A stretch of DNA of 64,000 nt, from IMG/VR virus record IMGVR_UViG_3300045971_000344, positions 1 to 64,000 of that record. One strand, written 5' to 3'. The notes under the pieces were generated by a model. It had not been told where the DNA came from. It made no database searches and saw only the letters and a program-made list of their open reading frames with translations. Both the position numbers and the translations under genes were made by a program. Shown here piece after piece: positions 2,521-54,272 of this stretch; the stretch's first letter is position 1, and each line of letters begins with the position of its first letter.

Positions 2521-2718
2521 ATGCCAATATACGAATACTCTTGTAATAACTGTGGACATAAATTTGAAAAGAAAAATTACATGGTTTATCGTAATGAATA
2601 TCAAGAATGCCCTAAATGTGGAGGACAGTTATCCTTAGCAGTTAGCGCAAATAGTCGACGATCTGAAAGCTGGGTGGCTAATGTACCAAAGCCTGTTAGT
2701 ACAAAGAAGAAAAGGTGA
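2521..2718 (+). CDS. FmdB-family zinc-ribbon protein
   Basis: MPIYEYSCNNCGHKFE...CPKCGG signature. Confidence 0.85.
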   Translation: MPIYEYSCNNCGHKFEKKNYMVYRNEYQECPKCGGQLSLAVSANSRRSESWVANVPKPVSTKKKR

Positions 2719-3158
2719 GAGTTATGTTTAATAGAGGTCCTGATGTAGTTGTTGCTCTTATAGAGCACAAAGAAAAGCCTGAGCATTTTCTTGTGCAGTA
2801 TAGAGCTCAAAGTAAACAATACTCAGGGTGGTTGGAATTCCCCGGTGGTAAAATGGAGCCGGGTGAAAATCCAGAATCAGCCTTATGCCGAGAAGTTAGG
2901 GAAGAAGTAGATATTACAATAGCCGGACACTGTAAGTTTGTGGAAATGGATTATTTATTCCCTTCTGGATTGTATCATAAAGTAATTTTCTACTTTGTTA
3001 AACCGGAGTACTGGATTAGAACACCTATCGGCATGGAGGGTCAGCGTATTGGATGGTTGACTTTGTTCCAGATAATGACCTATCCTAAAGTTTTGCCCTT
3101 AAATAGAGCAGCGGCATTAATATTAACTACAGAACGACATCCAGATATCCTGGAGTAA
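2715..3158 (+). CDS. NUDIX hydrolase (MutT-like)
   Basis: Nudix box GGKMEPGENPESALCREVREEVDI. Confidence 0.9.
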   Translation: MRVMFNRGPDVVVALIEHKEKPEHFLVQYRAQSKQYSGWLEFPGGKMEPGENPESALCREVREEVDITIAGHCKFVEMDYLFPSGLYHKVIFYFVKPEYWIRTPIGMEGQRIGWLTLFQIMTYPKVLPLNRAAALILTTERHPDILE

Positions 3159-3177: not shown

Positions 3178-4128
3178 GTGAGATCCGAACAAGAATTTTT
3201 GGATTTATCTGCACAGTTAGAAGAGGCAATCAGTTCTCAGAATGAGATGCAAAGACTATTATCTCATTACCAAGGATTAGCCGAACATTATCAGGACATT
3301 TTTAACCTAGCTCCTGTGGGCAAACTCATTTTAGACCTAAGAGGGAACATTCTCCGTGCCAATGATAAGGCTTGTGCGATATTAGGATGTAAAAAGGAAT
3401 TTGTGATTACAAAGTCTATATTCTCTTTTGTAAATACAAAAGGCTCTTCTGCGTTCTATGAAATGTTGCTAGAGCACTTCCATCATGTTAAGTTTGGAAG
3501 CACTGCAATAAGATGTGATGTGATGCTAAAAGCTAAGTGGTGTGCCTTCCATTCCAGTCTGTTTTCCGATGACCTGATTATGGTCACACTAATAGATATT
3601 ACTGACCGAAAAAACACTGAGCATAGAGTTATCCATAGCAGTACCCACGATAGTCTTACAGGGTTATACAATAGAGCCTTTTTTACTTCCGAACTTGAAA
3701 GACTATCTCTGAGTAGGCTATTTCCTATAACGATAGTAAGTTCAGATATTAATGAGCTTAAAAAGGTTAATGACACCAAAGGACATAAAGCGGGTGATGC
3801 CTTAATTAAGCGAGCCGCTTCCGTGTTAGTTGCCTCATTTAGAGCCGAGGATGTTGTTGCGCGTTTAGGCGGGGATGAGTTCATTGTTCTTCTCCCAACT
3901 ACCACTGAAGAACAAGCCCAGCATATTATTATTAGTTTGAAGAATAATCCTATCATTACTTCAGGTCAACTGAGTTTATCTATCGGTATAGCCACTGCGG
4001 ATTCACAAGACAAGTTGCATAGAGCCTTAAAATTAAGTGATAAACGAATGTACCAGGATAAGCAAAAGTATAGAGATAGGGTCAGTCAAGTAGTTCTTGG
4101 AGTGAACAATGGAAACTATAATCAATAA
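3178..4128 (+). CDS. PAS-domain diguanylate cyclase (GGDEF)
   Basis: HDSLTGLYNR, DINELKKVNDTKGHKAGD, RLGGDEF, RxxD I-site (RAED), SIGIA, SDKRMY; N-terminal coiled coil and PAS (IFNLAPVGKLILD...ANDKAC). Confidence 0.92.
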   Translation: MRSEQEFLDLSAQLEEAISSQNEMQRLLSHYQGLAEHYQDIFNLAPVGKLILDLRGNILRANDKACAILGCKKEFVITKSIFSFVNTKGSSAFYEMLLEHFHHVKFGSTAIRCDVMLKAKWCAFHSSLFSDDLIMVTLIDITDRKNTEHRVIHSSTHDSLTGLYNRAFFTSELERLSLSRLFPITIVSSDINELKKVNDTKGHKAGDALIKRAASVLVASFRAEDVVARLGGDEFIVLLPTTTEEQAQHIIISLKNNPIITSGQLSLSIGIATADSQDKLHRALKLSDKRMYQDKQKYRDRVSQVVLGVNNGNYNQ

Positions 4129-4276: not shown

Positions 4277-4407
4277 GGAATACAGGATTTGTTGCTATTT
4301 CCTATCTTAAAAAGGGTGATAATGGTTCCTGGGTTTGCTGTGGTAATAAGAATCCAGTCTATGCAAATGTATGTCTTATCTGTATGCGAAATAAGAATTG
4401 GAGGTAG
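4273..4407 (+). CDS. Small Cys-rich protein, RanBP2-like zinc finger (44 aa)
   Basis: W-V-C-C-G-N-K-N...C-L-I-C pattern; start overlaps upstream stop (ATGA). Confidence 0.45.
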   Translation: MRNTGFVAISYLKKGDNGSWVCCGNKNPVYANVCLICMRNKNWR

Positions 4408-4409
4408 CT

Positions 4410-4679
4410 ATGGACTGTAAAGGTTGTGGTAAATGCTGTGATATTACAAACGACCCTTATTTAGACGTAGAGTTGTTTGAGGAAGACAGGGTACCCATTT
4501 ATGGCCTGGAGTTTCGGTCATCTTCTGGACAATTTTACCTTAAAAGAAATCTTGATGGTACCTGTATTTTTCTAAATGAGAATAAAGAATGTGCTATCTA
4601 TAATGACCGACCTAGAGAATGTAGAGAGTTTACTCAAGAGCACTCAGTGTGTAAACGCTTAACAGGTAACGACTCATGA
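4410..4679 (+). CDS. YkgJ-family cysteine-cluster (CxxCxxCC) protein
   Basis: CKGCGKCC...CIFL...CAIYNDRPRECREF; ATG 4410 follows GGAGG. Confidence 0.85.
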   Translation: MDCKGCGKCCDITNDPYLDVELFEEDRVPIYGLEFRSSSGQFYLKRNLDGTCIFLNENKECAIYNDRPRECREFTQEHSVCKRLTGNDS

Positions 4680-5098: not shown

Positions 5099-5755
5099 AT
5101 GTTGGTAACAAAAATATTTCGATTCGAGGCCTGCCATTCAGTAAAAGACGCATACACTTGTAGATGTGACAGAACGCGGACAGATAAATCTGCCGGGGGC
5201 TTACACGGACATTCTTATGTTGTAGAGCTCACCCTTGAAGGGGATGTGGCAAAATCAGATGGAATGGTTATTGACTTCACTCTTGTTAGGGAAACTTTTA
5301 ACCATATAATTGATGCTTTTGACCACACTCTTGTTATTGGGGATACTGATAAAGTAATGGCAACCCTAGGTCCCTACATCTCAGCTCGTTATATAATTTT
5401 CCCTGGTAATCCAACTGCAGAGAATATGGCTGAATACTTCTTTAACTATCTTGATAGTTATCTTACTGACAACTACCTTTTAGGCGTAAGTGTATTCTCA
5501 GTAACCGTGTGGGAAACCGTTACAGGGAAAGCGACTAAGGTAAGAGAGATAAAAGGAGTTTTACCCAGTGACTTGTATATTAGTCCTGCCTTAGCTTATG
5601 GTTGGTCAGACTATGATAAGAAGACTTTTGAGTATAACAACGGACATATTTTAGAAGAAAAGCAGCTGATAACAAACATAACTACCCTAGATACAACTGA
5701 TTCTGCTGGTACTACCCTAAATTTTACTGCTACTCTTGGAAATAAAAACTGTTAA
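5099..5755 (+). CDS. queD: 6-carboxy-5,6,7,8-tetrahydropterin synthase (QueD/PTPS)
   Basis: TKIFRFEACH...LHGHSY...GMVIDF...FDH...NPTAENMA...VWET. Confidence 0.9.
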   Translation: MLVTKIFRFEACHSVKDAYTCRCDRTRTDKSAGGLHGHSYVVELTLEGDVAKSDGMVIDFTLVRETFNHIIDAFDHTLVIGDTDKVMATLGPYISARYIIFPGNPTAENMAEYFFNYLDSYLTDNYLLGVSVFSVTVWETVTGKATKVREIKGVLPSDLYISPALAYGWSDYDKKTFEYNNGHILEEKQLITNITTLDTTDSAGTTLNFTATLGNKNC

Positions 5756-5793
5756 TATACATTGATATTTGCTTAAAGGGGAGGTGATTCTCC

Positions 5794-7161
5794 ATTAGAC
5801 TATTCAGTCCAGAAACAGAGTTTAGAGTAATAGCTTCTATCTGCAATTCTCCTCCTAATTCAGTTACTACTACCTTTCTTTTATCCAGAATTACTACTGA
5901 GCACTTTCATTTTGATCCAGCAAAAGCCGCTTTTAAGCGAATAATGAAGTTGATGCAAACTAGTGGTAATATTCCTGGGTATAGAGAGTTAGAAGCTGAT
6001 CCAATATTGGATGAAGGCTTTAGAGCAGAAATATCTGCGTATGATGATAAAAAGAAAAAGATAAGACAAGAGAAAACCGCTAAGGCGGTATTTGATCTCT
6101 TAGAAAGCTATAGAAAAAAGAGGGTACTGTATAACGTAGCAAAGTCTACAATAGATAAATTAAAAGGCGAAGCTGTAGATGTAGACAGCCTTATACAGGC
6201 AATGGGTGATAATTTAGCTGTTGCAACCTCGGCTGTCTCAACAATTGAACAACTTGTCCACATAGGAGAAGGTAACAACAGCGTTGAGCTCGTTAAAGAG
6301 ATACTAGATGGAGAAGGTTCTCCAACTATTCCAACAGGTTTTAAGACGTTTGATGATAAAAATGGAGGATTCTTTAAGCAGGCAGTTGCGGTATTATCTT
6401 CAAATAGTTCAGGCGGTAAGTCCGTTTGCGCACTTCAGATGGCAATAAATATGTACTGGGCAGGGCAAAGCACTTGCGTACTCTCCTTAGAGATGAGTAA
6501 AGACCAGTACATGGCACGTTTCTTATCTAACATAAGTGGTGTATCTGCCTCAAGAATATTTTTGAAGAAACTTACTGAAGACGAAAAGAATGAAATACGA
6601 GCTGCCTATAAAAAGTTTGTTATCTTCGGAAAGAAAAATAATGTACGATGGACAATACTAGCCCCTGAAACTGGTTTATCACTTGACCAGTTACTTATGA
6701 CTTGTAAGCCCTATAGCTTTGACGTAGTAACAATTGACTATGCTACCTTATTAGAAGAGGCTGATGTAGATAACCAAGCACGAGCTTTGGCCTCAATTAC
6801 ACGCCGTTGTAAAGTATTCTCTCAAGTATCAAAATGTCTAGTTATAGTACTAGCTCAGTTGTCTGATGATGGGTTTATAAAATACAGTAGGGCGATAAAA
6901 GAAAATGCGGACCACGTTTGGACCTGGACTTTTTCCGATACGGAAAGAGAAACTCATAATATAACAATAAAAGTTGATAAAGGTAGAAACCAAATGTGTT
7001 TTCCTTTTGAAGTTACTGAAGATTTCTCAACTATGAGAATTATAGATAATGGACCCGTAAGATCATTCGATGAAGATACTGAAAACGAATTTTCAACAAA
7101 AAAGAAAAAGAAAGAGAAAGAAGAACCTGAAGATGATTATTTAGCGGAGGACGATATCTGA
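5794..7161 (+). CDS. dnaB: DnaB-like replicative helicase (probable ATT start at 5794)
   Basis: IPTGFKTFD, SNSSGGKS (Walker A), LSLEMS, VTIDY, VLAQLS, IKENAD, VDKGRN. The frame is open 50 codons upstream of ATG 5944 to an ATT downstream of GGGGAGGTG. Confidence 0.88.
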   Translation: MRLFSPETEFRVIASICNSPPNSVTTTFLLSRITTEHFHFDPAKAAFKRIMKLMQTSGNIPGYRELEADPILDEGFRAEISAYDDKKKKIRQEKTAKAVFDLLESYRKKRVLYNVAKSTIDKLKGEAVDVDSLIQAMGDNLAVATSAVSTIEQLVHIGEGNNSVELVKEILDGEGSPTIPTGFKTFDDKNGGFFKQAVAVLSSNSSGGKSVCALQMAINMYWAGQSTCVLSLEMSKDQYMARFLSNISGVSASRIFLKKLTEDEKNEIRAAYKKFVIFGKKNNVRWTILAPETGLSLDQLLMTCKPYSFDVVTIDYATLLEEADVDNQARALASITRRCKVFSQVSKCLVIVLAQLSDDGFIKYSRAIKENADHVWTWTFSDTERETHNITIKVDKGRNQMCFPFEVTEDFSTMRIIDNGPVRSFDEDTENEFSTKKKKKEKEEPEDDYLAEDDI

Positions 7162-9035
7162 TGATGAAAAAAGATCCGTTAAAGTCAGAGATTAGAAAAT
7201 TGAAGTCCCTACCTCTTGAGTCTCCTTTTGGAGTAATTGATGACCCACCACCATATAAATCAAAAAAGAAACAAAAAGAAACAATCTATATTCCTGAAAA
7301 AACAAGTTCTGATGTTCCCAAAGCAGCAAAATTAGGTCGTCTTCCAAAAGAAGTAGAAAAGATACAAGGTAAGATAGACAATCTGGTAAAGGTTCCTAAA
7401 GAGCAACTTGACCAATTCATGCAGGTCTATACAGATTCTAGCAAGGGTATAGCTAATGACTTTTTGACCCGAATAGCCCCTGTATTTTTATCCTTTGAAG
7501 ATGCAATGAGCTATTCAACCGTAGCTCTAAGGGATTGTTTGTCTTATGATGGTGAGATTGATCTTGAAATACTACCTCTTTTAGAATGGGCGGCACGTAT
7601 CTCTGTACTAGCAACATTTTTAGATAAATTAGGTTTACCTTACGTCTATAAAAAACGGTTTATGCAACTCTCAATAGCAAAGGCTGTTGAAAAAGCATTC
7701 TTAACTAAAAATTCTATGTTGGGGACAACTGTTGGAATCTCCGCACAGAATAGAGTAGCCGGAATAGTAAACACCCCAAATAAGACTACCACCACCCCAA
7801 ATGTTCCACCTGCGGCTATTCGGACACGGAATTTGAATACAAATCGGAAAACAAAATGATCCGCCATCTGCATATTTGTCCCTTACAAGCAGAATTTAAG
7901 TTCTATAATTGCTGTCCAATTCATTCTTGTCTTTATTACAGCAAAAAGTGTTTTTCTTGTTGCATAAAATTAGGTACAAAAGAATCAGATAACGATTCCA
8001 TAGGAATATCTAACTCAGAACTTTTATTCTATAAAGGATCCGATGAAATTAGATCAAGTAAACATATAGCTGATCTTAAAAAAGGGGGAATACTACGCAT
8101 ACAGCAAATTTATGGTTTCAATGCTTATTTAGATTTTATCCGTGAGAACTACTTTGACCTACGGACACATTTTACTCAAAAATTTAGCTTTGGAAGAAAA
8201 TTACGTTCAAAATGTATAAGTAACACCTTAGCTTTATATCCTTATAATGTAGACCTTTTTAAGATAACAAAAGCAGATTTAGTATTAATCTTAACAAATA
8301 ACGTCTATAGTTCATTTGTAAGTAGAAAAAAATTAGATTCAAATATTTTAGACTATTTCTTAATTATACATCTGTCAAAAGAGAGAGTGGAGAAAGTGCG
8401 GGCGGTACTAAAAAACTATTTTAGAAAAAAGGGGATAACACATGATTTCAGCGAAGAAAGCAATAAAGGGATTGGCCTCATTGAAAGTTAGCTCTCTTGA
8501 GGACAAAAGTTTAAAAGAAATTTGGGTCATAAACGAAACAAAGCCAAAAGGAATTATTATTCTTGATATTAAGAATAAAATGGACGGAAGTCCTACTTTG
8601 GTAACTATTCCTCCTACTTGGATTCCTATTTGTTTAACTGATCAGATACCCAAGTCTATGCTTACAGACAGCCCTAAATTCAGGTCGATTTTATCCTTGG
8701 GTCACATTAAGCTCCTTGATCCAAAAGGTGTTCATGAGATAATTGCAATACCTGAGATTGCAGAAGAGATTACTGCAATAAAGAATAAAACATCGGAAAT
8801 GTTTAAGGAACAACTTCCCGAGGCTATAAAGACAGAAGCGATTTCTGTAATTGTCCTGGATATCCTTTCAAGAGAAGAAAGTAAGACAATAACTGAATCT
8901 GAAGCAAAAGACATTTTGAATAACAAAGAAGATGAACTATCCAATGAAGATCTTGAGCACTTAATCAATAATAGTAACATGGCAAAAGTTAAGAAATGGG
9001 CCGCAGAAATGATTACCGATAGAGATTCAGAATAA
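7161..9035 (+). other. Three hypothetical CDS between helicase and primase (7161..7859, 7856..8491, 8442..9035)
   Basis: Overlapping co-oriented ORFs of 197-232 aa. Confidence 0.65.
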
Positions 9036-9042
9036 CATACAT

Positions 9043-9077
9043 AGGAGGGCGAGGGTCTCTGACCCTCGCTTCTATTC
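9043..9077 (+). promoter_or_regulatory. SD separated from the primase start codon by a 9-bp hairpin
   Basis: AGGAGG 9043-9048, GCGAGGGTC-TCT-GACCCTCGC 9049-9069, 8 nt, ATG 9078. Confidence 0.65.
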
Positions 9078-10067
9078 ATGAGTAATTTATCCGATACAAA
9101 CTCTGCGCTAGATATTATACTTGAAGAATTAGCTAAATACGGAGGGCAACAAAAAACGGGTACCTCTTATAGGCTCGTTGTTTGTCCTTTTCACTCTGAT
9201 AGCTCACCTAGCTTGAGTATAAACTTAAGTAAACCTGGCTTTAAAGTTGGTACCTTTAACTGTTGGAGCTGCCCTGCCTCAGGTAGTTGGAATAAATTTG
9301 CTGAAAAAACGGGCTTAAGAAAGATAAAAGACTGGCAGAATAAAGAACAAACAATATCTGAAATAAGTGCAGATGATGAAGCCCACTTGATGGGGTTTAG
9401 GTCAGAGACAGACTATGCAACGTCACTAGGCGTTGACGTAATAACGGACTGGTTTCCTAATAAATCCTGGAGAGGTTTTAGTGGAAAGCTTTTGGCCCGT
9501 ATTGGGGCAAAATTAGCTATAGACAGAGTAACCAATGACCCGGTGTTATTGTGTCCTGTTATAGTAAATAAGAAGAAGGTTGGTTACGTTAAGGCATTAC
9601 TTGAGAAAAAACAGGGTAGATTGGCTTACGTCTCCAGTAAAGGTCCTTGGACTAAAAACACCGCATTATTTCCTTTTGACTATGTAAAAGCCAAGATAAG
9701 AAAAATGGGTTTTGTTATACTTGTTGAAGGTCCAAGAGACGCATTGAGATTGATAACCGCAGGACTGCCTGCACTTGCTATTTTGGGTGTCCAAAATTTT
9801 GGGGACAAGAAAGCATTGATTTTGGCTTCACTTGGAATTGATATTTATGTAATGCCGGATAATGATGAAGCCGGAATTACTCTATATAAAAAGGCAAAGG
9901 AATCTTTTAAGAAGCTTGGAATATCCATAAAGCACATAAAACTTCCTAAAAAGAAAGATAAACAAGGAAGAATAATAAAGATGGACCCATGTTCTGCTCC
10001 AGATGAAGTAATAAATACCCTAAAAGAACAATTGGAGGATTACTATAATGGCGGAGCAGTTAGATAA
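9078..10067 (+). CDS. DNA primase (CHC2 zinc finger + TOPRIM)
   Basis: CPFHSDSSPS...FNCWSC; LVEGPRDAL; MPDNDEAG. Confidence 0.9.
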   Translation: MSNLSDTNSALDIILEELAKYGGQQKTGTSYRLVVCPFHSDSSPSLSINLSKPGFKVGTFNCWSCPASGSWNKFAEKTGLRKIKDWQNKEQTISEISADDEAHLMGFRSETDYATSLGVDVITDWFPNKSWRGFSGKLLARIGAKLAIDRVTNDPVLLCPVIVNKKKVGYVKALLEKKQGRLAYVSSKGPWTKNTALFPFDYVKAKIRKMGFVILVEGPRDALRLITAGLPALAILGVQNFGDKKALILASLGIDIYVMPDNDEAGITLYKKAKESFKKLGISIKHIKLPKKKDKQGRIIKMDPCSAPDEVINTLKEQLEDYYNGGAVR

Positions 10068-11055
10068 TCATTGGTTACAAAAGAACATAAAGCAGGTCTT
10101 TGATGATGCTAATAAGTTGAAAATAAAAGGAGTATCAACTAAGGAACCTTATATTCGTCCCTCTATGGCTCCCGGATGCGCACTAAAGATGTTTGTTGAG
10201 ATATGCAATGGTTTAAACGATGGATGGGAAACAGAAGAAAACTTCATGATGGCGTACTACACATCCATCGGCACATTGACCCACGAAATATTCCAACGGT
10301 GGTTTGGTCTGACTGGAAAATTAATAGGCAATTGGAGTTGTGGTTGTAAAGGTACAAAAAAGGAGAAAATTCTTCTAGGAAGAACTGTCTATGAAATAGA
10401 TGTCCCGAAGGTTTATATTAAAAACATAGTGTCCCAACAGATCTGTACTCATTGCAAAAAGCCAATGAAGTACGAAGAGATAGGAATAGACGTAAAAGGC
10501 ATAGTAGGACACATAGACGGTATTCTAGAATTTACTGTAAATAACAAAAAATATCATATAGTTATTGACTACAAAGGAACAAATGCAGATAAGCTTAAAC
10601 GTGATAAAGATAATCCAAGGTTCCCTCAATATCCAGATCCTAAGCATATAAAGCAAATAACCCTATACTCTTATGCTTTGAAGAAATATTACTCCGAAGA
10701 TCATGGATTAAATATAGTTGGTTATGCTATTTTATACACTTCAAGGGATACCCCAATTCCTAAGTATAAAATTGTTCCAAAAATTATGGATGAGCTTGAC
10801 TGGGATATCGCAAGTGAATTATTCAAGTCCCAGATAAAACAGGTCCGTATACTAAACAAATGTTTGACCGATGGTAACTTGGAGCGCCTTATAAAGCACC
10901 GGTTATGTCCTGATATGGATTACTATAAGTGCAAGGTACACCATAAGTATAGTGAGTGCGCCTACTCTGCTATCTGTTTTAGCGCGCCTAAACAGTTAAT
11001 GTCATTACTAAAAGAAGCAAAAAAGAAATTAAAACAAAAGAAAGGGGGATACTAA
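10048..11055 (+). CDS. PD-(D/E)xK Cas4/RecB-like exonuclease
   Basis: IGTLTHE, GHIDGIL...VIDYKG, QITLY; C-terminal Cys cluster. Confidence 0.75.
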   Translation: MAEQLDNHWLQKNIKQVFDDANKLKIKGVSTKEPYIRPSMAPGCALKMFVEICNGLNDGWETEENFMMAYYTSIGTLTHEIFQRWFGLTGKLIGNWSCGCKGTKKEKILLGRTVYEIDVPKVYIKNIVSQQICTHCKKPMKYEEIGIDVKGIVGHIDGILEFTVNNKKYHIVIDYKGTNADKLKRDKDNPRFPQYPDPKHIKQITLYSYALKKYYSEDHGLNIVGYAILYTSRDTPIPKYKIVPKIMDELDWDIASELFKSQIKQVRILNKCLTDGNLERLIKHRLCPDMDYYKCKVHHKYSECAYSAICFSAPKQLMSLLKEAKKKLKQKKGGY

Positions 11056-11056
11056 A

Positions 11057-11488
11057 GTGTTAGAAAAAAGAGAAAAAGCAAAGGGCTTAACACTAAAGAA
11101 AATACTTTCTGAATCAATTATTTTGGACCTTAACAACGCAAAAGATGTCCATGTTACGAATGTAAAAGAAACTGTCTCTGCAAAAGGTAGAAAAGCAGTT
11201 GTAGCTACTTGTTTTTCCGATCCTAAGGGAAATAAGGTCCCTACTAAGTATAAGTGCTCCGTTATAGGTCTTGAGGATGATGGCCCACTATCAGGACAAC
11301 GGTGTATGTTTAGCTGTGAGTGTGACCGTTATATGTATTACTATGAGTACGCACTCGCCCAAAAGGGCGCGGCTAAGATTAAGTTCTGTAACGGAAATGC
11401 TCCGACCGTTACGAATCCCTCACTTATTCCTGGTGGGTGCAAACACTTAATTGCGCTATCGCGTAAGCTCGTTAAGGAAAAGAAGTGA
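11057..11488 (+). CDS. SWIM zinc-finger protein
   Basis: FSCECD...CKHLIAL. Confidence 0.75.
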   Translation: MLEKREKAKGLTLKKILSESIILDLNNAKDVHVTNVKETVSAKGRKAVVATCFSDPKGNKVPTKYKCSVIGLEDDGPLSGQRCMFSCECDRYMYYYEYALAQKGAAKIKFCNGNAPTVTNPSLIPGGCKHLIALSRKLVKEKK

Positions 11489-12507
11489 GATACTTTGAAG
11501 TTAACAAGACAAACGTAAACCTTACGGGTAATCAGATATATACTATATTTGAGAGCATTAGTAATCAAATGCTGTATAACTTAAACTTGTTTTCTGGTTG
11601 TTTAGAAAAGAACTTAGTGTCAATGTTAGCGTGGGTCTCTAAAAATAGACGAAAAAAGATATCGTCTATTGATAGGGTAAAACAAATCCAATATTTATTT
11701 TATTACATAAGTACAAGTGATTTGGATGAGCGTTTTAGGGCCCTTCGCAAAATAAAAATGGACAAATTCTATGTAAGAAAATTAGTTCAACTATTTATCC
11801 AAAATTCTGAAAATTATCAAGATTTGTATTTAAAGTATCTAAACAATAATATAGATCTTGATGACATGGTAAAAATGTCTGAAATTGAGTCCCGATTAGA
11901 AACCTCTAGAACTCACCTGTATCCTTTGCTTAAGAATTTAATTTCCTATTTAAAGCTTTATAGTGAAATGACTGACTTAGTTATAAGCAAGTATTATAAG
12001 TTTCTTTTCTCTTTGGTTAAAAAGAGGGTCCATGCTACCAGTAGATACTTTGATGAAGAAGAGCTGTATCAGAATTACATCGGAGCAGCGTTAAAGGCAT
12101 TAGATAGGTATGATCCTAAAAAGGGAGCATTAACTTCTTACATACAACTCTGGATAAAGAATAATATGCAGTCCGCAGAAGAAAATCCAGAGTATGGAAT
12201 TGCGTATGAAATACCTGCTTTACGACTAAAACAGTCTCTAGATGATGATACAAAAAAGGATGAAAATTTTTCTATATCTTTGGACTCGTTATGCGATGAC
12301 CAAAATACTGAAGCTTCGGCAGTAACTAGTCTTATGTATTCTTTCACTGATGACTTGGAAGAGGATACTAAAAGACAAACTTTGTGGCACCTAGCGAAGA
12401 TTGCTGACCCTACAGGAATAGCTCGGTTATCTTTGGGGATAATGGAATACGTAGACTCAAGTATGAAACAGCAAATGAAGGCCTCTATGACTGCTTCATT
12501 TACTTAG
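11485..12507 (+). CDS. Phage sigma70-like transcription factor
   Basis: Region-2-like ELYQNYIGAALKALDRYDPKKGALTSYIQLWIKNNM; later ISLDSL. Confidence 0.7.
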   Translation: MRYFEVNKTNVNLTGNQIYTIFESISNQMLYNLNLFSGCLEKNLVSMLAWVSKNRRKKISSIDRVKQIQYLFYYISTSDLDERFRALRKIKMDKFYVRKLVQLFIQNSENYQDLYLKYLNNNIDLDDMVKMSEIESRLETSRTHLYPLLKNLISYLKLYSEMTDLVISKYYKFLFSLVKKRVHATSRYFDEEELYQNYIGAALKALDRYDPKKGALTSYIQLWIKNNMQSAEENPEYGIAYEIPALRLKQSLDDDTKKDENFSISLDSLCDDQNTEASAVTSLMYSFTDDLEEDTKRQTLWHLAKIADPTGIARLSLGIMEYVDSSMKQQMKASMTASFT

Positions 12508-12565: not shown

Positions 12566-14065
<1,500 letters not shown>

Positions 14066-14855: not shown

Positions 14856-15479
14856 GTGAATACAGACGAATCGCTTTATGATATTTTAGGTATAACTAAG
14901 GATGCAACCGAAGAAGAAATTAAGAAAGCATATAGAAAACGAGCACAAGAAACACATCCAGATGTAAAAGGTAGTGCTGAAGAATTTTCTTATGTAAATG
15001 AAGCATATACGATTTTATCCGATAAAAAAGCTAGATTAATCTATGATAGATCAGGTAGGAAACAAGGTGAGAAAAATAAGGACCAATTAAGAACAGAAGC
15101 TATTAGAGAAATTCAAAGGGTTATGGTTCAAGTTTTGGATGACTCTGATGATACTATCTTTTTCTCTAATTTACCTGAGCACATACTTAGGATATTCAAT
15201 GCTAATATTGAGCGTTGTAAGTCAATAGTTGCTGAAACTAGAAAGAAAATAAAACGCTTACGCCGTTATAAACAACGTTTTCACTATAAAAAGGGAGACG
15301 ATAATAACTTTATTCAATTTGGTATTGAAGGACAGGTATATCATTTATCTACGTCTATAAGCGTAGAGATTCAAAAGATACGACAGTTTGAGTTGATGTT
15401 AGAGTTGTTGGCTGAATACGATTGGGAACCTGAAAGTATAAAGCCTTCTTTTGGGTTAAAAACGGTATTTGATAAATAA
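14856..15479 (+). CDS. J-domain (DnaJ-like) protein
   Basis: LYDILGITKDATEEEIKKAYRKRAQETHPD...VNEAYTILSD. Confidence 0.9.
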   Translation: MNTDESLYDILGITKDATEEEIKKAYRKRAQETHPDVKGSAEEFSYVNEAYTILSDKKARLIYDRSGRKQGEKNKDQLRTEAIREIQRVMVQVLDDSDDTIFFSNLPEHILRIFNANIERCKSIVAETRKKIKRLRRYKQRFHYKKGDDNNFIQFGIEGQVYHLSTSISVEIQKIRQFELMLELLAEYDWEPESIKPSFGLKTVFDK

Positions 15480-16003: not shown

Positions 16004-16519
16004 ATGTCTATTCACGTTACTAAAGCACTCGCTAGAATCCAAAAGGCACACGATACGTTTAAGGGGTCGTTATTTTGTGGACACTCTGGAGGAAAAGACA
16101 GTACGGTTATCTTAGACCTTGCTCTAAAGGTTGACCCAGGAATAAAGATCATTCATAATAGTAAGGACTCAACTCATCTTGAGACTATATTATTCTTATA
16201 TGAGTTATCAAAAGTCCATACAGTGTTCTTTGTACCCGGAAAAGACATGCAGGAATTTTTAGAATCGAATGACCTCAGCTGCCAGATTGACGGGACGCGA
16301 ATTGCCGAGGCTACTAGAGAAGATGGAAGAAGTGTAGACCTGATCTCAAATGGAGAAAATCTTTCTAGAAGCGATATGAGGTTGTTTGAAAATCGCGGGT
16401 TGTATAACATGAGTATGTTATACCCAATATATGACTGGTCTGATGAGCAAATTTGGACCTATATTGTCCAGAATAACATACCAGTATCTAAAGAATATAA
16501 AGGGAACGGTTATGTCTAA
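16004..16519 (+). CDS. PAPS-reductase-family (PP-loop) protein
   Basis: CGHSGGKDSTVIL, IDGTRIAE, YPIYDWSDEQIWTYI. Confidence 0.8.
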   Translation: MSIHVTKALARIQKAHDTFKGSLFCGHSGGKDSTVILDLALKVDPGIKIIHNSKDSTHLETILFLYELSKVHTVFFVPGKDMQEFLESNDLSCQIDGTRIAEATREDGRSVDLISNGENLSRSDMRLFENRGLYNMSMLYPIYDWSDEQIWTYIVQNNIPVSKEYKGNGYV

Positions 16520-17324
16520 TATAATATTTGCCCCACACTGCGATGATGAGACAATCGGATGTTGGACCTTGTTGTCTGAAAGAAAAATAGACGCAGTATA
16601 CTATTTCTTTGAGCTTTCAGAACAACGTAGGATTGAGGCAAGAAACTGTGCTGAGATGTATGGTTTCTTGCCGTACTTTAATACTGGTAGTACTCTTTAT
16701 GCTTTTACTAGCTTGTGGGAACCTGGGGATACGGTCTATGTTCCTCATATTAAGGATAATCACCCTCACCATAAGACTATAAATCAGCTTGCTAAATCTG
16801 AGGCCTCCAAATTAGGATTGGTTTTAAAGTATTACTCAGTTGATATGAATACTAAAGAGCTGACCGTGTTAGAAAAAGGGAGCCAAAAGAGAGAGGACTT
16901 GATAACGCTCTTTCCTTCTCAGGACACTTTGTGGGGTGGTGACGATAAATATTGGTTATTTGAGAGTCTTTCAGATACTGACTTCAGCTCAAAGATTTTC
17001 ATAAAGACCACTTTTGAAGGGATTCATGCTTATCCAGCAGCACCTGAAGGTGTAGAATTTTTGGCACATCCACATAGGCATATTTTTCATGTAGAAATTA
17101 AGGTGGACGTGTTCCACCATGATAGGGAGATAGAATTTATCCTGTTTAAGCGAGAAATAGAGAATTACATAGTCGTTAACCTTAGGTCTTTACAGTACAA
17201 ATCTTGTGAAATGATCGCCGAAATGTTCTTGAATTACGTTATTTGTAAATATAAGAAAAGGTCTTGTAGTGTTATAGTTAGTGAAGATAATGAAAACGGG
17301 GCTGAGGTGTCCTATGTCTATTAA
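16512..17324 (+). CDS. PIG-L-family deacetylase fused to a T-fold QueD-paralog (DpdL-like) domain
   Basis: N-term FAPHCDDETIGC...HPHH; C-term FEGIHAYP...LAHPHRHIF...REIEF...SCEMIAE...VSEDNENGA (LxxxHRHxF). ATG 16512 is the likely start. Confidence 0.7.
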   Translation: MSNIIFAPHCDDETIGCWTLLSERKIDAVYYFFELSEQRRIEARNCAEMYGFLPYFNTGSTLYAFTSLWEPGDTVYVPHIKDNHPHHKTINQLAKSEASKLGLVLKYYSVDMNTKELTVLEKGSQKREDLITLFPSQDTLWGGDDKYWLFESLSDTDFSSKIFIKTTFEGIHAYPAAPEGVEFLAHPHRHIFHVEIKVDVFHHDREIEFILFKREIENYIVVNLRSLQYKSCEMIAEMFLNYVICKYKKRSCSVIVSEDNENGAEVSYVY

Positions 17325-18675
17325 GTCCTCAATTCCCTTAATGAATATCTTTGGACTAAATCCTACAAGTAAGAATATTCAAAAATTTTACATACCACAT
17401 TTTTCACAAGTTAAGTCTATTTATGGTAATACTAAAGAGACTCTTTTAGATGTAAAGAGCGTAATGTTTACCCGAGACGCGTGGGCCAATGTTGACTTTT
17501 GGAATAGCGATGCAGATGTAATGTACGTAGAAGATAGTTTAAGTTGGCGCGATGCTATGAATACTAGTGGAAACCATTTTGATTACTTCGATGGGTTCTT
17601 AAAGATTTATAGAGTAGCTCATAGTAATTTAGAGTTGGGCTTTGGCGAAAAAAATGACAACCATGTCCATGATATTTATGCTAATTTTCTAACTGCTGAC
17701 ATTTTATGGGTTAGTCCAATTGTATATGATAGAATTTTTCCTTTCTTGAAAAAGCTGTACTGTAGGTCCACGTTGGAGACTTTGAAAGCAAAAACAGTTT
17801 CATTACCGTATCCTGCGTTTTATAAAATTTCAAAAAATAAGGAGTTGGAAAAAACTCTTAGAATACATAAAGCAAAACCTTTAGTGTTTTTGTGGAATCA
17901 TAGACTAGTACCTAATAAAAACTATAAGGACTTTTGTACTATTCTTTGTGAATTGAATAGTCAACATCCTGAAATACCTTTTGAAATTCATTATGTTTGT
18001 GCCGAGCCCGAAGAAAACATACAAAAAGCTACGCCTAATCAGTTAAAGCCTTTTATTAAGTACGTGGGCTTTATTACAGATAAATCTACTTATGAAAAGG
18101 CTTTGAGGGATACTAACATAACAATAGCAACAGCTAAATTAGAAAGCTTTGGAAGTTCTGTTTTTGATGCAATTGGGTTAGGAGTACTTTTACTTAATCA
18201 GGATTGTAATGACGCCCTTTGCTCTTTGATTGGAAAGACCTATACTTTCTCTAAAAAAGACATGGTTGCTGCTATAGTAAAGGCATATAAGAGTAAAACT
18301 TATAGAGAAGAAATGCACGGGCACAACTTGGACGGGGTAAACTCTCTATTGAAGAATGCTCCTGAAAAGGTATTGTCTGAAAAAATAAATGAGTATTTTT
18401 CAGTAAAGAAACAGCAAGGCCCTGTTAAGTCACGTGTTCTTTCAGACGCATTACGAGCATTGGAAAAGACTGCTTTAACAAAGAAACAGCTGTTTCAAGC
18501 TGTAGGATGGAATGTTGCTAAAAATCCTGTAAATGCTCACTGGGCGGGTTACTACTACGCACTTCGCCGAGAAAATGTAAATATTAGTTTAGTAAACGGT
18601 ATACAATACTTTCATTTAACAGCTAAGCCAGAAGTAAGAGAAGCAGCTCTTAAAAAGAAAGGATTATTTTCATGA
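17314..18675 (+). CDS. GT-B (GT4-like) glycosyltransferase with extra C-terminal domain
   Basis: FLWNHRL..NKN, TAKLESFGSSVFDAIGLG (ExFG motif). Confidence 0.75.
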   Translation: MSIKSSIPLMNIFGLNPTSKNIQKFYIPHFSQVKSIYGNTKETLLDVKSVMFTRDAWANVDFWNSDADVMYVEDSLSWRDAMNTSGNHFDYFDGFLKIYRVAHSNLELGFGEKNDNHVHDIYANFLTADILWVSPIVYDRIFPFLKKLYCRSTLETLKAKTVSLPYPAFYKISKNKELEKTLRIHKAKPLVFLWNHRLVPNKNYKDFCTILCELNSQHPEIPFEIHYVCAEPEENIQKATPNQLKPFIKYVGFITDKSTYEKALRDTNITIATAKLESFGSSVFDAIGLGVLLLNQDCNDALCSLIGKTYTFSKKDMVAAIVKAYKSKTYREEMHGHNLDGVNSLLKNAPEKVLSEKINEYFSVKKQQGPVKSRVLSDALRALEKTALTKKQLFQAVGWNVAKNPVNAHWAGYYYALRRENVNISLVNGIQYFHLTAKPEVREAALKKKGLFS

Positions 18676-19094
18676 AGATAGGATATGAAGTTGAGGGAAG
18701 GCTAAAGGGAGTAAGATCATTATTTTTAGATGTTTCCGAATTGGATAAATTTTATGAGCACTTTGTACGATGTAACTGCATAAAGACAGTACATGAAGTA
18801 TGTCAGATCTATGTATCTGACCATTCAAATACTTTAGACTTATTTAGTATTAAGCTTCTTAACCTTTCAAAAGAATTTTTACTGACAGTTGAAGTAACAG
18901 AACTCAAGGTGGATCCGCCTCGGTATATAAATACTATGTTGTGTATAGACTCACCTAGTTTCTGGTTTTTACGGAGCATTGACCAAATTAAGATCTCTAA
19001 GGATCTTAGAGTGTTTTCTACAACGGTTGAGAATATGAGTATAACAAACCCTGAAGAATTTAAAAATGATACTGAGGTAACCTTACATGGCTAG
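18672..19094 (+). CDS. Hypothetical protein within the modification cluster
   Basis: Coupled between the two glycosyltransferases. Confidence 0.65.
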   Translation: MKIGYEVEGRLKGVRSLFLDVSELDKFYEHFVRCNCIKTVHEVCQIYVSDHSNTLDLFSIKLLNLSKEFLLTVEVTELKVDPPRYINTMLCIDSPSFWFLRSIDQIKISKDLRVFSTTVENMSITNPEEFKNDTEVTLHG

Positions 19095-20187
19095 AATTAT
19101 ATATATCCCTATTGAACCGCTCCAAGAGCGTTACTCACAGCAGTGGTACGATAATTTTCCGAAAGCCTTTAAGACCCAGGGTTATGAGACAATAGTTATT
19201 GATGGTATTGTCTTGTCTGATACGGTTGAAGTTGGAACTTTTTTGGATATAAATTCAACCATACACTATAAGTGCGCACAACTTCAAACTATCTCCAAGA
19301 TGTTTAGATCAAAGCAAATACAGGACGGTGATATATTCTTTTTTGGGGACTTAGAATTTTGGGGTATAGAAAGCGTACGCTTACTTGCAGATCTAAACCA
19401 GGTCGATATTAAGATAACCGCATTTTTACACGCCGCGTCTTATACTATTGAGGATGCCTTTGCAATAGCAGAACCTTATCAGCGGTATACTGAGGTTGGA
19501 TGGATTTCGATCTGTGATTTTGTCTTTGTAGGATCTGAGTATCATAAACAAGCTGTAGTAGACCGAAGACTTGCCCCAGTAAACCGGTTGGACCTAGCTG
19601 ATAGAATTGTTGTAACAGGTAACCCTCTTTGGAAAGAAGACTATGCACTTACTAGTGTCCCGGAGAAAAGGGACCAACTTATCATAAGTAATAGATTCGA
19701 TTGGGAAAAGAGGCCCAATTTAAGTTTGGACTTCGCATATATTCTTAAGAAGAGAAATCCAGATTTGCAGATTATGATAACTACCAGTAGGAACGAATTT
19801 AAGTCAAATAAGCAGTGGTTAGTTGACTACGCAACAGCTTTAGAAAAAGATGGTATTGTAACAATAAAGAGTGGACTGTCTAAAGCAGAGTACCATGAAA
19901 TTTTGGCGCAGAGTAAAGTAATGCTAACAAACTCTATTGAAGAGAATTTTGGGTATTGTATTATTGAGAGCTGTGTCTATAATACTTATCCTGTGCTAAA
20001 GAACGCGCTTTCACATCCAGAATTGGTCCAAGGTGATGAACGGTTATTGTTTAACGATGAAGACGAAGTTGTTAGCAAGATCGAGCGTCTCTTAAGCGCA
20101 GATTTTTCTGTTGTACACTATGCAGAAAACTATTTTTACAGTATAGATAGAATAATGACCTATATAAATACTTTAAGTCCGTGTTAA
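19087..20187 (+). CDS. GT-B (GT4-like) glycosyltransferase
   Basis: ISNRFDWEKRP, YHEILAQSKV..TNSIEENFGYCIIES, HPELV. Confidence 0.85.
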   Translation: MARIIYIPIEPLQERYSQQWYDNFPKAFKTQGYETIVIDGIVLSDTVEVGTFLDINSTIHYKCAQLQTISKMFRSKQIQDGDIFFFGDLEFWGIESVRLLADLNQVDIKITAFLHAASYTIEDAFAIAEPYQRYTEVGWISICDFVFVGSEYHKQAVVDRRLAPVNRLDLADRIVVTGNPLWKEDYALTSVPEKRDQLIISNRFDWEKRPNLSLDFAYILKKRNPDLQIMITTSRNEFKSNKQWLVDYATALEKDGIVTIKSGLSKAEYHEILAQSKVMLTNSIEENFGYCIIESCVYNTYPVLKNALSHPELVQGDERLLFNDEDEVVSKIERLLSADFSVVHYAENYFYSIDRIMTYINTLSPC

Positions 20188-20200
20188 ATCGAGGTAGTAT

Positions 20201-21682
20201 ATGTCTTATAGTTTTGTGCCAGCAGCAATAGATTCTTTCGATGCTCGAGGAATGACCTTGTACGTTAAGTATACTAAGTCAAAGTCAAATAACGTCTTTA
20301 TTAAAGAGGACAACCCTAGATACACTTGGTTTATTTGCCCTGACCGAGAGCTCTTAATAGTTAAGAATACAGCACAAGAGTATCACCCTGCAGGTGAAAA
20401 CTTTGATGAGGCTATAAATCTAGATGTTTATGATGATAGAGTCTTACAAGAACTGGGCACCGATATCTATATGCTAAATAGTGGTGCCTTTGGAGACAAC
20501 CCAGAGAGGAGTCCGAGGCTTAGGCGTAATGGAAGAAATCCAAAGTTGGTCCAACCACATATTTTAGCAGACTCCGGAGGATTTCAGATTTTATCCGGGC
20601 GAACGGACTACATTGACCCTATAAAAGTAGTAGAATGGTATAACGAAAATACCGACTGGGGAATGGTATTGGACGTTCCACCAATTGTTTCTGATTGGGA
20701 CAACGTTAAACGCGGTGCTCGTATCCAGGCAAAAAATACTGAAATAATGTTTAAGCACAAAACTAAAGAGCTTGAACTTGTAAATGTTATCCAAGGATTT
20801 GACTCTAAGCAACGTGCCGCATTTTTAGACATGGTTGACCACCCGGAAATAAATAGGCTCGCTATAGCCGGCTCTTATAGGATTGAAAATCTTGTAGAGC
20901 GAATAACTGATATACTTAAGATTATTCACCTTGATAGAAAATTCAAGCATTACCATATTCTTGGTATCTATAGTTTGACCACGCTTTTACCTTTGATTCA
21001 GATCTCTAATTTGTCTACAGTAAATGCGCTTATAACTTCGGACGCAAGTACTCCCTTACAAAGTGCAGTTAATAAATTTTATCATCACCAACAAAGTATT
21101 TTTTCCCCAGAAAGGCGGCTACCTATTGGGCATAAAGATATCGTCTATAACTCACGTCTATATCTTCCCTGTCATTGCCCAGTATGTAGTGCAGTTAAAT
21201 ACCAGAATATTTTTAGTTTCGTAGATACTGGAGTTATAACGGCTCTTTTAACTTTGCACAACCTTTATGAGATTAATCGCTATACATCTATGATGAATGA
21301 GTTATCTCAAACAATAAGCTATAAAGAATATAGATCTATAACTCGGCATCAACTAGGCGGTCGAGCTCCGGCCACACTTCAAGCTCTGGATCTTATCCAT
21401 GAGTATTCAAAAGATCCAGATAAAGCGTTTAAGATCTATTCAGCTATAAATACAGGCTCTATGTTATTCAAGCCCTCACCTTTATACAAAGATATTTCTG
21501 ATACACCAATAGCGTTATTGGTAAAAGGTAATGGAGGAATTGAGAGAAAAGAAGAGACTGCGGAAGAAATGGTCGAACGCCAAAAGAGAGTATTACATAA
21601 CTACGAATCACGTTATAAAATAAAACCCAAGGATAACACAAAGAAAAAGAAAAAGAAGAAAAAATCTAAGGTAAAAGGATGA
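20201..21682 (+). CDS. Guanine transglycosylase (TGT/DpdA-like)
   Basis: ADSGGFQ, VLDVPP, VIQG, HILGI, SDAS, Zn site CHCPVC...HNL. Confidence 0.85.
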   Translation: MSYSFVPAAIDSFDARGMTLYVKYTKSKSNNVFIKEDNPRYTWFICPDRELLIVKNTAQEYHPAGENFDEAINLDVYDDRVLQELGTDIYMLNSGAFGDNPERSPRLRRNGRNPKLVQPHILADSGGFQILSGRTDYIDPIKVVEWYNENTDWGMVLDVPPIVSDWDNVKRGARIQAKNTEIMFKHKTKELELVNVIQGFDSKQRAAFLDMVDHPEINRLAIAGSYRIENLVERITDILKIIHLDRKFKHYHILGIYSLTTLLPLIQISNLSTVNALITSDASTPLQSAVNKFYHHQQSIFSPERRLPIGHKDIVYNSRLYLPCHCPVCSAVKYQNIFSFVDTGVITALLTLHNLYEINRYTSMMNELSQTISYKEYRSITRHQLGGRAPATLQALDLIHEYSKDPDKAFKIYSAINTGSMLFKPSPLYKDISDTPIALLVKGNGGIERKEETAEEMVERQKRVLHNYESRYKIKPKDNTKKKKKKKKSKVKG

Positions 21683-31927: not shown

Positions 31928-32101
31928 CTACTTTATACCTAAATTTTTACCTGAATTCCATTAAAATTAACCCGAATTCCATGAAAAAACCTCATAAAAT
32001 AACCCATTTCTATGGGTGTTTTATGCGATAAAAACCCCTTAGGGGTCAAAAACCGTAGTATTTTGCATAGGTTACCAAGAAAACGAACCTTTTAGGTAAT
32101 T

Positions 32102-32130
32102 TTGACATTTGGGTAAAAATTTGATAAAAT
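32102..32130 (+). promoter_or_regulatory. sigma70-type promoter
   Basis: TTGACA-17-TAAAAT with TGn extended -10. Confidence 0.8.
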
Positions 32131-32227
32131 AAAATTGAAGGGGAATAGAAAAAGGAATACATCACGAATTTTCGCAGATTTGCGAAATCATTACAAACCC
32201 AAAGAGTTGTACGAAAAGGAGATCATC

Positions 32228-33055
32228 ATGGCACGCACAGCAAAAATTTCGGCAATCGCAGCAGTTGAGACGCTCACATCTAACGCTACATCATCCAAAA
32301 AGGAGAACACCATGAAAACCAACGCTATCGAGATCATCTTCACCCCGGCCAAATCGCTTGTCGCTATCGTAAACCCCGCAACTCCGGCCGTTGTCGTTCC
32401 CGAAGTCGCAGTCGAAGCAGTTGCTCCGAAGCGCACCCGCAAAGCAAGAGTTGTTGCCCCGGTTGTGGTCGCAGTTGTTGAAGAGCCCAAGAAGCGCACT
32501 CGCAAGACAAACAAGATCGCAACTCCGGTTGAGGTCGCTGAAGTCGTGGTAGTCGCTCCGAAGCGTGAGCGCAAAGCAAAAGTCGGCGTTAACTTCGAGA
32601 ACGAACTCGGCATGATCTTCAAACCCGCATCGCAGTTCAAGAAAGCGCTGTCCGCAACTCCGGTAGTCGAGGTCGAGGCAGTTGCTCCGAAACGCACTCG
32701 CAAGTCCTCCAAGATCGCAACTCCGGCAGTCGAGGTTGCAGAAGTGGTTGTTGAAACTCCGAAGCGTGGTCGCAAGGCAAGAGTTGCAGTCGAAGTCGAA
32801 GTCGTAGCAGCTCCGGTATCGGCCAAAGTTATCTCGATGGACGAGCATCGCGCACGCCGCAGCATGAAGGCCCTGGCAGAAGTTTCGGAAAAAATCATCT
32901 CCGCAGATTCCGAAAAGGCAGCAAAAAAGTTCTTCAAGAAGTATGTTGCTGAAGTCGGTATCGAAGATGCAGCACGCAACCTGCGTTACATCCTCCGCAA
33001 GCTGAACTCCGAAAAAGCAACAGAGTTGTTCGCTCAGTACAGCGTTAACCAGTAA
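32228..33055 (+). CDS. Ala/Val/Pro/Lys-rich repeat protein (histone H1-like); second in-frame start at 32312
   Basis: VEAVAPKRTRK-type repeats; AAGGAG before both ATGs. Confidence 0.7.
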   Translation: MARTAKISAIAAVETLTSNATSSKKENTMKTNAIEIIFTPAKSLVAIVNPATPAVVVPEVAVEAVAPKRTRKARVVAPVVVAVVEEPKKRTRKTNKIATPVEVAEVVVVAPKRERKAKVGVNFENELGMIFKPASQFKKALSATPVVEVEAVAPKRTRKSSKIATPAVEVAEVVVETPKRGRKARVAVEVEVVAAPVSAKVISMDEHRARRSMKALAEVSEKIISADSEKAAKKFFKKYVAEVGIEDAARNLRYILRKLNSEKATELFAQYSVNQ

Positions 33056-33166
33056 CAGTTGTTCAACCTCGGCGAGAGGGAATGGTTTTATCTACATTCC
33101 CTCTCGACACTCTTTCATTTTCACTTATCGATCCATGCAGTACAAATTAACTAAAGGAGAATTATC

Positions 33167-34603: not shown

Positions 34604-34732
34604 AATCATTCTGATCTGAATTGTGGGGGAGAGCGTTTTGGTGCTCTCCCCATTCAGAGTTTTTGGCTGTGGTAAGCGCCCTTTACAGGGCCTTTATCAG
34701 ATTCAAAAAACCTGAGAAATGAGGATTACACC

Positions 34733-35974: not shown

Positions 35975-35986
35975 GGACCGAAAACC

Positions 35987-36048
35987 AACGGTTGTCAAAT
36001 TCCAATAATTTAAATGAATTTGACAACCGTTTCGCTGTATGTTATAAT
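35987..36048 (+). promoter_or_regulatory. sigma70 consensus promoter with a 15-bp inverted repeat over the -35
   Basis: TTGACA 36020-36025, 17 nt, TATAAT 36043-36048; AACGGTTGTCAAATT/AATTTGACAACCGTT. Confidence 0.85.
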
Positions 36049-54185: not shown

Positions 54186-54272
54186 GGGCGAGTAGTCGAA
54201 TGGCATAGACAAAGGATTTAAAATCCTTGGCCCGTAAGGGAGTGATGGGTTCAAGTCCCTCCTCGCCCACCA
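54186..54272 (+). tRNA. tRNA-Leu (anticodon UAA), CCA encoded
   Basis: GGGCGAG/CTCGCCC acceptor stem, AAGGA-TTTAAAA-TCCTT anticodon arm, long variable arm, GTTCAAGT T-loop, ACCA end. Confidence 0.95.

Follow-up and report, generated by a model that had tools for sequence, protein, structure and literature searches.

A predicted product-inhibited PAS-GGDEF diguanylate cyclase encoded by a complete phage genome from pond water

High levels of cyclic di-GMP (c-di-GMP) switch bacterial motility off and turn adhesins and exopolysaccharide on. Known phage tampering with bacterial second messengers consists mostly of the destruction of immune signals. GGDEF genes have been annotated in isolated phages, namely Bacillus phages G (gp350) and SP-15, Escherichia phages vB_EcoS-683R6 and vB_EcoM-613R3, and Pseudomonas phage Y1 (PMC12484599 among the sources), and viral diguanylate cyclases have been read as auxiliary genes for biofilm formation or signalling in a Mu-like virus of the Cariaco Basin (PMC7785012) and in sargassum viruses (PMC11295528). 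Host c-di-GMP is also the presumed target of phage peptides that bind YfiN in P. aeruginosa (PMC8085984). In the literature that we searched, we found no publication demonstrating c-di-GMP synthesis by a phage-encoded GGDEF protein. Here we describe a PAS-GGDEF gene at positions 3178–4128 (+ strand) of the window, by which we mean the first 64 kb of the 294,944-bp viral record IMGVR_UViG_3300045971_000344 (labelled G000). The gene belongs to the phage and, judging from its residues, most likely encodes an active, dimeric, product-inhibited, GTP-specific cyclase.

The closest described systems are cellular cyclases, namely the PAS/LOV-GGDEF proteins (8c05, 5xgd), PleD and WspR, with which the phage protein shares its architecture, its catalytic and RxxD residues and a predicted parallel dimer. 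It departs from them in being phage-encoded, in having its own invariant set of PAS histidines and cysteines, and in sequence: it is 22–33% identical to solved structures and at most ~41% identical over its full length to any cellular protein found. The GGDEF proteins of isolated phages are likewise phage-borne, several of them in jumbo genomes, but their identity to the protein described here is at most 37% and confined to the GGDEF domain, and they are independent acquisitions. The virome cyclases come from temperate, Mu-like or unverified contigs, and many of the matches lie at contig ends and are possibly host flanks; here, in contrast, the assignment of the gene to the phage was checked against an independent assembly, depth, synteny and selection. 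The YfiN-binding peptides share the presumed target, the host c-di-GMP level, but, being small peptides, they act on a cyclase that belongs to the host, whereas this phage brings a cyclase of its own.

How widespread such genes are bears on a premise of the initial annotation, that diguanylate cyclases are normally cellular genes. A tblastn search found GGDEF in 119 of 50,697 phage records, most of them doubtful fragments or mislabelled bacterial assemblies, with partial copies in Bordetella FP1/CN1/CN2/MW2. The premise thus stands insofar as phage GGDEF genes are rare, yet a small minority of phage records do carry one, and the degree of rarity that had been implied was overstated, phage and virome cyclases having been annotated before. 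PHROGs contains seven GGDEF families, all labelled "unknown function". Two GGDEF peptide patterns matched at least 487 IMG/VR stretches, contigs of 191–448 kb included, whose phage status is unverified, and RxxD plus GGDEF is kept in 68 of the best 80 IMG/VR matches. Five of these large IMG/VR contigs (L103, L144, L168, L169 and L179; 191–448 kb, unverified as phages) carry unrelated internal GGDEF genes, three of which keep both RxxD and GGDEF. GGDEF in phages is therefore rare but not new, and the gene described here joins a known, functionally uncharacterised class.

The gene is one open reading frame (ORF) of 316 amino acids with a GTG start codon, and the Joint Genome Institute (JGI) gene call is identical. 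Its start is backed by the orthologues: their ATG stands at the equivalent position and opens the N-terminus M-RSEQ that they share with this protein. Along the protein, an N-terminal coiled-coil helix is followed by a PAS domain, a linker helix and the GGDEF domain, all encoded on the + strand. The long helix (residues 2–44; 3178–3309), placed by DSSP and the homodimer model, is the predicted parallel coiled-coil dimer interface; the PAS domain (residues 45–140; 3310–3597) is delimited by the Pfam PAS, PAS_9 and PAS_8 matches, model topology and conservation. The PAS-GGDEF linker helix (residues 141–155; 3598–3642), based on model helix 142–154 and conserved columns, carries the motif DITxRK, which is shared with related cellular PAS-GGDEF proteins (conserved columns D140, I141, T142, R144, K145 and E148). 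The GGDEF catalytic domain (residues 156–300; 3643–4077) is supported by Pfam, by Foldseek and by a match at 3643–4077 in a genome search. Profile scores lie above their cut-offs throughout: Pfam GGDEF (PF00990) reached 116.4 bits over residues 156–300 (cut-off 23.8; E 1.4e-33), PAS (PF00989) 34 bits (cut-off 22.6) and PAS_9 (PF13426) 28.7 bits (cut-off 27), with PAS_8 also matching, while NCBIfam TIGR00254 and TIGR00229 scored 113.4 and 38.4 bits (cut-offs 37.4 and 22.9). No NCBIfam equivalog cut-off was reached, so the protein is an orthologue of no named cyclase.

With these profiles above cut-off and all motifs located, the initial annotation of a PAS-GGDEF protein with intact active site (A-site) and inhibitory site (I-site) is borne out. 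The DxxxxKxxND motif is present as D190-INEL-K195-KV-N198-D199 and the second motif as G202-H-KA-G-D207, an aligned substrate- and metal-binding block encoded at 3745–3798. The I-site RxxD is R222-AE-D225 (3841–3852), aligned with RPED of the solved cyclase Dcsbis (4zmm) and lying exactly 5 residues upstream of the A-site G231-GDEF235 (3868–3882, assigned by motif position), which is itself preceded by R229-L; a further motif reads K295-QKY-R299. D190, N198, D207, K295 and R299 align with identical residues of Dcsbis, and we take their PleD counterparts to be D327, N335, D344, K442 and R446. Across 35 homologues most catalytic ligands are invariant, as are R222 and D225, and among the matches listed, Asp occupies the specificity position (D207) in 119 of 120 proteins, the query included. 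GacA, a Hypr cyclic GMP-AMP (cGAMP) synthase (5VS9/6D9M), shares the GGDEF fold, but Hypr proteins have Ser at the Watson-Crick specificity position (Ser348 in GacA), and the S348D substitution makes GacA a pure diguanylate cyclase (PMC6456294). The phage protein has Asp207 where Hypr membership calls for Ser or Thr, so c-di-GMP is the expected product, and its intact RxxD predicts product inhibition, which suits signalling rather than nucleotide depletion. On these residues, the protein is most likely an active enzyme that makes c-di-GMP.

The AlphaFold2 model, built from a 35-sequence alignment, has a mean predicted local distance difference test (pLDDT) score of 89.4 and places a helix at residues 2–44, a five-stranded PAS domain at 48–140, a linker helix at 142–154 and the GGDEF domain up to residue 300. 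In a Foldseek search, the structures that it resembles most over its full length are a LOV-activated diguanylate cyclase (8c05) and PA0861 in its PAS-GGDEF part (5xgd); PleD, WspR, DgcR and SadC are among those matched by the GGDEF domain. When two copies were predicted together, the interface score ipSAE was 0.41, against 0.00 for the best control, with at least 88% contact agreement between runs and a partner pLDDT of at least 82; it thereby passes the homodimer mark, which in calibration 21 of 30 solved homodimers and none of 23 monomers passed. The predicted interface consists of an in-register parallel coiled coil (residues 2–47) and the PAS sheet (residues 125–139), with in-register model contacts at 10-10, 14-14, 17-17, 21-21, 24-24, 28-28, 31-31, 35-35, 38-38 and 42-42. 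These predictions support a homodimerisation that would unite two GGDEF domains.

The record is rated 100% complete by CheckV and contains no other GGDEF gene. Replication-type genes of the phage genome include DnaB, primase, a PD-(D/E)XK nuclease, a sigma factor, SSB, UvsX, SbcCD, a clamp loader and Dda, and the same-strand neighbours of the cyclase gene are all of phage replication type. Elsewhere in the genome PHROGs identified a tail sheath, tail fibres and an NAD ligase; the Pfam sheath and terminase models had no match in the genome, but PHROGs did find sheath and fibres. The nearest isolated phages are the jumbo myoviruses PaBG, Lu11, Erwinia Y3 and Dickeya AD1 (27–36% amino-acid identity), and no tyrosine integrase was found in the genome. 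This ~295-kb pond-water phage is thus probably a virulent jumbo myophage.

Because no more than 3.2 kb separate the cyclase gene from the start of its contig, which IMG/VR classes as linear, chimerism needed testing: a host gene might have been misassembled onto phage DNA, or a host flank might stand at the contig end. An independent assembly from a second sample, a 293,540-bp contig, encodes the identical protein at 39–60 kb, and in this sister contig the far end of G000 joins directly to window position ~1306. In Logan contigs from two pond-metagenome runs, depth was 26 and 25 for the cyclase contig and 27 and 25 for the 60-kb far-end contig; the stretch 84–1305 had a depth of 7–10, and a joint skipping it (80 to 1399) had a depth of 27 and 23. 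As the sister contig and Logan depth show, this stretch (84–1305, − strand) is a population-polymorphic, GIY-YIG-like homing-endonuclease insertion with its ORF at 84–1067 (−); it adjoins a phage metallopeptidase gene and is carried by about one-third of the population. Its flank (1306–1531) shares only 89% identity with the allele lacking the endonuclease, which lies at the far genome end, a divergence that looks like co-conversion. The position of the cyclase gene near a contig end is therefore explained by an assembly that opened at the polymorphic insertion, and the sister-contig and Logan joints indicate a genome that is circular or circularly permuted in assembly. Equal depth means that the cyclase gene has the phage's own abundance; its GC content (0.386) is close to that of the genome (0.391; 46th percentile), and its GC content at third codon positions resembles that of its neighbours. 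Orthologues in related phage contigs and synteny agree with the independent assembly, depth and GC content that the gene is phage-encoded, as had been claimed. A chimeric host insertion revealed by read mapping had been named beforehand as the outcome that would overturn this claim; the check was run, and neither depth nor joints supported a chimera. The gene is thus the phage's own and no product of chimeric assembly, an artefactual origin being extremely improbable.

A search of 5.8 billion clustered proteins turned up no more than two close relatives, with 78% and 73% identity; the next matches are cellular PAS-GGDEF proteins, at ~41% over the full length and 50–58% over the GGDEF domain, the named ones belonging to Geobacter, Desulfuromonadales, Desulfobulbaceae, Nitrospirae and Dongiaceae. 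The 78% copy lies on a 13-kb contig (L002) with the same gene order (ORF185, NUDIX, cyclase and, further on, PTPS, DnaB and primase), and its neighbour proteins are 48–66% identical to their G000 counterparts. The 73% copy (contig L004) stands in another neighbourhood, one without NUDIX, where one neighbour resembles a window ORF (34% identity). Exhaustive searching with residues 1–150 added one more orthologue, truncated and 49% identical. The near-DNA search of the 50,697 phage records gave no match, a single-protein scan of IMG/VR found no close relative besides the phage's own record, and an alignment scan of the genome contigs brought up, among the matches listed, distant homologues that do not exceed 47% over GGDEF, and named no donor; protein P0121 was placed on no contig.

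In the tree, the full-length phage sequences, three in number, group together with 100% support, and ~2.5 substitutions per site separate them from the nearest cellular sequence. The phylogeny against cellular cyclases that had been proposed at the outset thus yielded a phage-only clade, but it resolved neither donor nor host, the clade sitting on a long stem. Pairwise ratios of non-synonymous to synonymous substitution rates (dN/dS) among the three full-length copies are 0.09–0.16 for either half of the protein, dS being saturated; by domain, they are 0.12–0.16 for PAS and lowest, 0.085–0.13, for GGDEF. The gene is under purifying selection, and a working protein has been retained through long divergence within the phage lineage.

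The PAS domain carries a distinctive set of residues. All four phage orthologues, down to the 49%-identical one, have H100, H102, C113, W121, C122 and H125 in common, although fewer than half (47%) of the PAS columns show no change among the three close orthologues. The PAS domains of the nearest cellular proteins are without these residues. In the model, H100 and H102 lie in the F-alpha helix, C113 in G-beta, and W121, C122 and H125 in H-beta. The translation contains neither NCRFLQ nor CxxCH, which we take to be the cofactor signatures of LOV domains and of c-type heme, respectively. A four-cysteine cluster in the PAS domain was also considered and is weakened by the replacement of C66 and C71 in the 49% orthologue. 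The invariant set offers a lead towards a metal-, heme- or redox-type site. It is a long shot that H100, H102, C113, C122 and H125 form a pocket which binds heme or metal and makes the protein a cofactor-bearing sensor, with c-di-GMP synthesis gated by oxygen, redox or metal status; if so, a virulent jumbo phage would sense the physiological state of its host and adjust host behaviour, or its own programme, through a second-messenger sensory pathway owned by the virus. Just downstream of the cyclase gene, window positions 4398–4679 encode a small CxxCxxCC protein (PF03692), and a thioredoxin gene lies downstream of the cyclase orthologue in the related contig (L002:2599–2943); these redox- or metal-type proteins may be relevant to a His/Cys-rich PAS domain.

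On balance, we favour the explanation that the gene encodes a phage-owned, soluble, cytoplasmic, homodimeric PAS-GGDEF cyclase that raises c-di-GMP in the host cell. The coiled coil and the PAS domains would hold two GGDEF domains in parallel, each binding GTP and Mg2+ through D190, N198, D207, D233/E234, K295 and R299, and the pair would condense GTP into c-di-GMP. Product inhibition at R222/D225 would then keep the signal bounded instead of consuming GTP in bulk, and the PAS domain may gate the activity by a cue, possibly through the conserved His/Cys pocket. Transcribed together with the replication/early-type gene block, the enzyme would cause a rise in c-di-GMP in the infected cell that drives host circuits towards a non-motile, adhesive, matrix-producing state. 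Candidate effects are a stop to motility, an altered surface or matrix, and superinfection exclusion; the phage could benefit if receptors were lost or masked, so that superinfecting phages are excluded, or if the infected cell were kept among susceptible neighbours. That the role lies specifically in exclusion or lifestyle is a tentative proposal. The suggestion of the initial annotation, that the phage may reprogramme the surface or lifestyle of its host or may time its own cycle by a cue sensed through PAS, is reasonable in the light of c-di-GMP biology. The cyclase protein matched no PADLOC family at E ≤ 0.001 and, with no phage effector found either, the simplest reading is that the signal acts on host effectors.

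Several points weigh against this explanation. Both the fold and the dimer are predictions and may reflect a memory of solved PAS-GGDEF dimers. PilZ and EAL proteins were not found in the phage (HD-GYP and MshEN were not searched for), nor was an Rfam c-di-GMP riboswitch in all 295 kb, so the genome holds no pointer to the target of the signal. Promoter and terminator scans returned counts equal to the shuffled expectation, and co-transcription is therefore inferred from spacing and strand only; a look for RNA sequencing runs brought up none. BLAST searches with the transfer-messenger RNA (tmRNA) of the phage, first against 5 genomes and later against 401, matched just 23–35 nt at its tRNA-like ends and thus indicated no host. 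The lineage, moreover, comprises only four sequences, which makes the conservation statistics weak.

The same small lineage bears on a different use of the signal, in which c-di-GMP would serve the phage itself: a PAS-gated signal read by an unrecognised phage effector would time development (for example replication, lysis or pseudolysogeny) by the redox, oxygen or metal state of the host. Purifying selection on the PAS domain (dN/dS 0.12–0.16), the invariant PAS His/Cys/Trp set missing from the nearest cellular PAS domains, and the redox-type small proteins downstream both here and in L002 all fit such a role, and an effector could be hidden among the phage ORFs, most of which are of unknown function. 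No PilZ, EAL or riboswitch was found in the phage, however, the distant orthologue has neither C66 nor C71, and the case is built on four sequences; we consider it unlikely. An intact I-site would also suit a protein that does not work as a cyclase but uses this site to bind or soak up c-di-GMP; alternatively, such a protein might regulate through protein-protein contacts. In either case host signalling would be lowered or rewired. Many GGDEF proteins are indeed degenerate receptors, but such receptors normally lose the GGDEF motif, whereas here the A-site, metal, base and phosphate residues are all intact and invariant in the orthologues and the GGDEF domain has the lowest dN/dS (0.085–0.13), which makes such a non-enzymatic role quite improbable.

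Asp207 likewise speaks against another product, be it 3',3'-cGAMP, a linear pppGpG-type molecule or another dinucleotide, acting as a decoy or interfering with cyclic-nucleotide immunity. The nearest named homologues come from Geobacter and Desulfuromonadales, groups with Hypr GGDEFs, and a decoy-nucleotide logic exists in phage-defence biology (PMC12657218); but the S348D change to the residue found here makes GacA a pure diguanylate cyclase (PMC6456294), and with no PADLOC match either, a different nucleotide is very improbable. The gene neighbourhood invites one more thought, that the cyclase manages guanine-nucleotide pools together with the MutT-like NUDIX gene and the 7-deazaguanine-type genes (FolE, QueD, QueE-like, TGT/DpdA-like), all of which draw on or act on guanine nucleotides, the adjacency of NUDIX and cyclase being conserved in L002. 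An I-site-inhibited cyclase would be a poor GTP sink, though, and the L004 orthologue sits in another neighbourhood without NUDIX; pool management therefore seems hardly probable.

Immediately upstream, separated from the cyclase gene by a 19-nt gap, lies a MutT-like NUDIX hydrolase gene (2715–3158, +; Pfam NUDIX 2.5e-13; NCBIfam MutT-like, below the equivalog cut-off), and the NUDIX–cyclase pair is conserved in L002. The NUDIX gene also matches a candidate defence model (PADLOC PDC-S07, 4.7e-21). Downstream, replication/early-type genes identified with PHROGs and Pfam occupy 5099–12507 (+) and comprise QueD/PTPS, DnaB helicase, primase, the PD-(D/E)XK nuclease and the sigma factor; the last (11485–12507) matches phrog_17569 at 1.4e-53, with the JGI start at 11623. 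An SSB-like protein at 12566–14065 (phrog_15004, 8e-74) has an extreme acidic tail, in which (GAT)n runs encode ~70 Asp (13502–13764) and are followed by 72-nt Lys/Asp-Glu repeats (13805–14041); these tail repeats account for a local peak in GC and AT skew. A DnaJ-domain protein is encoded at 14856–15479 (PF00226, 1.4e-20).

Genes of 7-deazaguanine type are located at 5099–5755, 16004–16519, 17281–18675, 19087–20187 and 20201–21682, a set made up of QueD/PTPS, a PP-loop/PAPS-reductase-like ORF and a TGT/DpdA-like protein between two GT1 glycosyltransferases. At the far end of G000, upstream, GTP cyclohydrolase I (FolE) and a radical-SAM QueE-like gene were found (L005:1–400 and L005:2433–3140), and Pfam detected no QueC. 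This is likely a 7-deazaguanine DNA-modification set and may produce a glycosylated deazaguanine hypermodification.

Further along the window, GC content rises to 0.47–0.49 at 32000–36000, compared with ~0.37 in the first 31 kb and 0.39 in the genome; the ORFs at 32135–33055, 33167–34603, 34987–35460 and 35384–35974 have no Pfam match, and the three scanned against PHROGs (34987–35460 was left out) have no match there. A 523-aa ORF at 47385–48956 matches the PHROG "transposase" phrog_10081 (1e-29) with no Pfam match and may be a second mobile element in the phage genome. The genome also encodes three tRNAs, tRNA-Leu(taa) at window 54186–54272 and tRNA-Met and tRNA-Gln at G000 ~83,570–83,890, together with a one-piece, full-length tmRNA at G000 85,845–86,257 (L008:2045–2457; Rfam 121 bits) whose tag peptide is ADNYGFEARLAA. 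Comparison of ADNYGFEARLAA with the tags of five representative genomes did not discriminate a host, and a suspected likeness to a rhizobial tag was supported neither by a literature search nor in Chelatococcus.

The finding stays at the level of annotation, and the enzyme class itself is textbook; its importance would be higher only if the PAS His/Cys site proved to be a real sensor. The gene is nevertheless a clean candidate for a first activity test, being short and encoding a soluble protein with its residues intact, from a complete jumbo-phage genome and within a phage-only clade under purifying selection. A regulated c-di-GMP synthase of phage origin would show direct viral control of motility, adhesion, matrix and receptor display.

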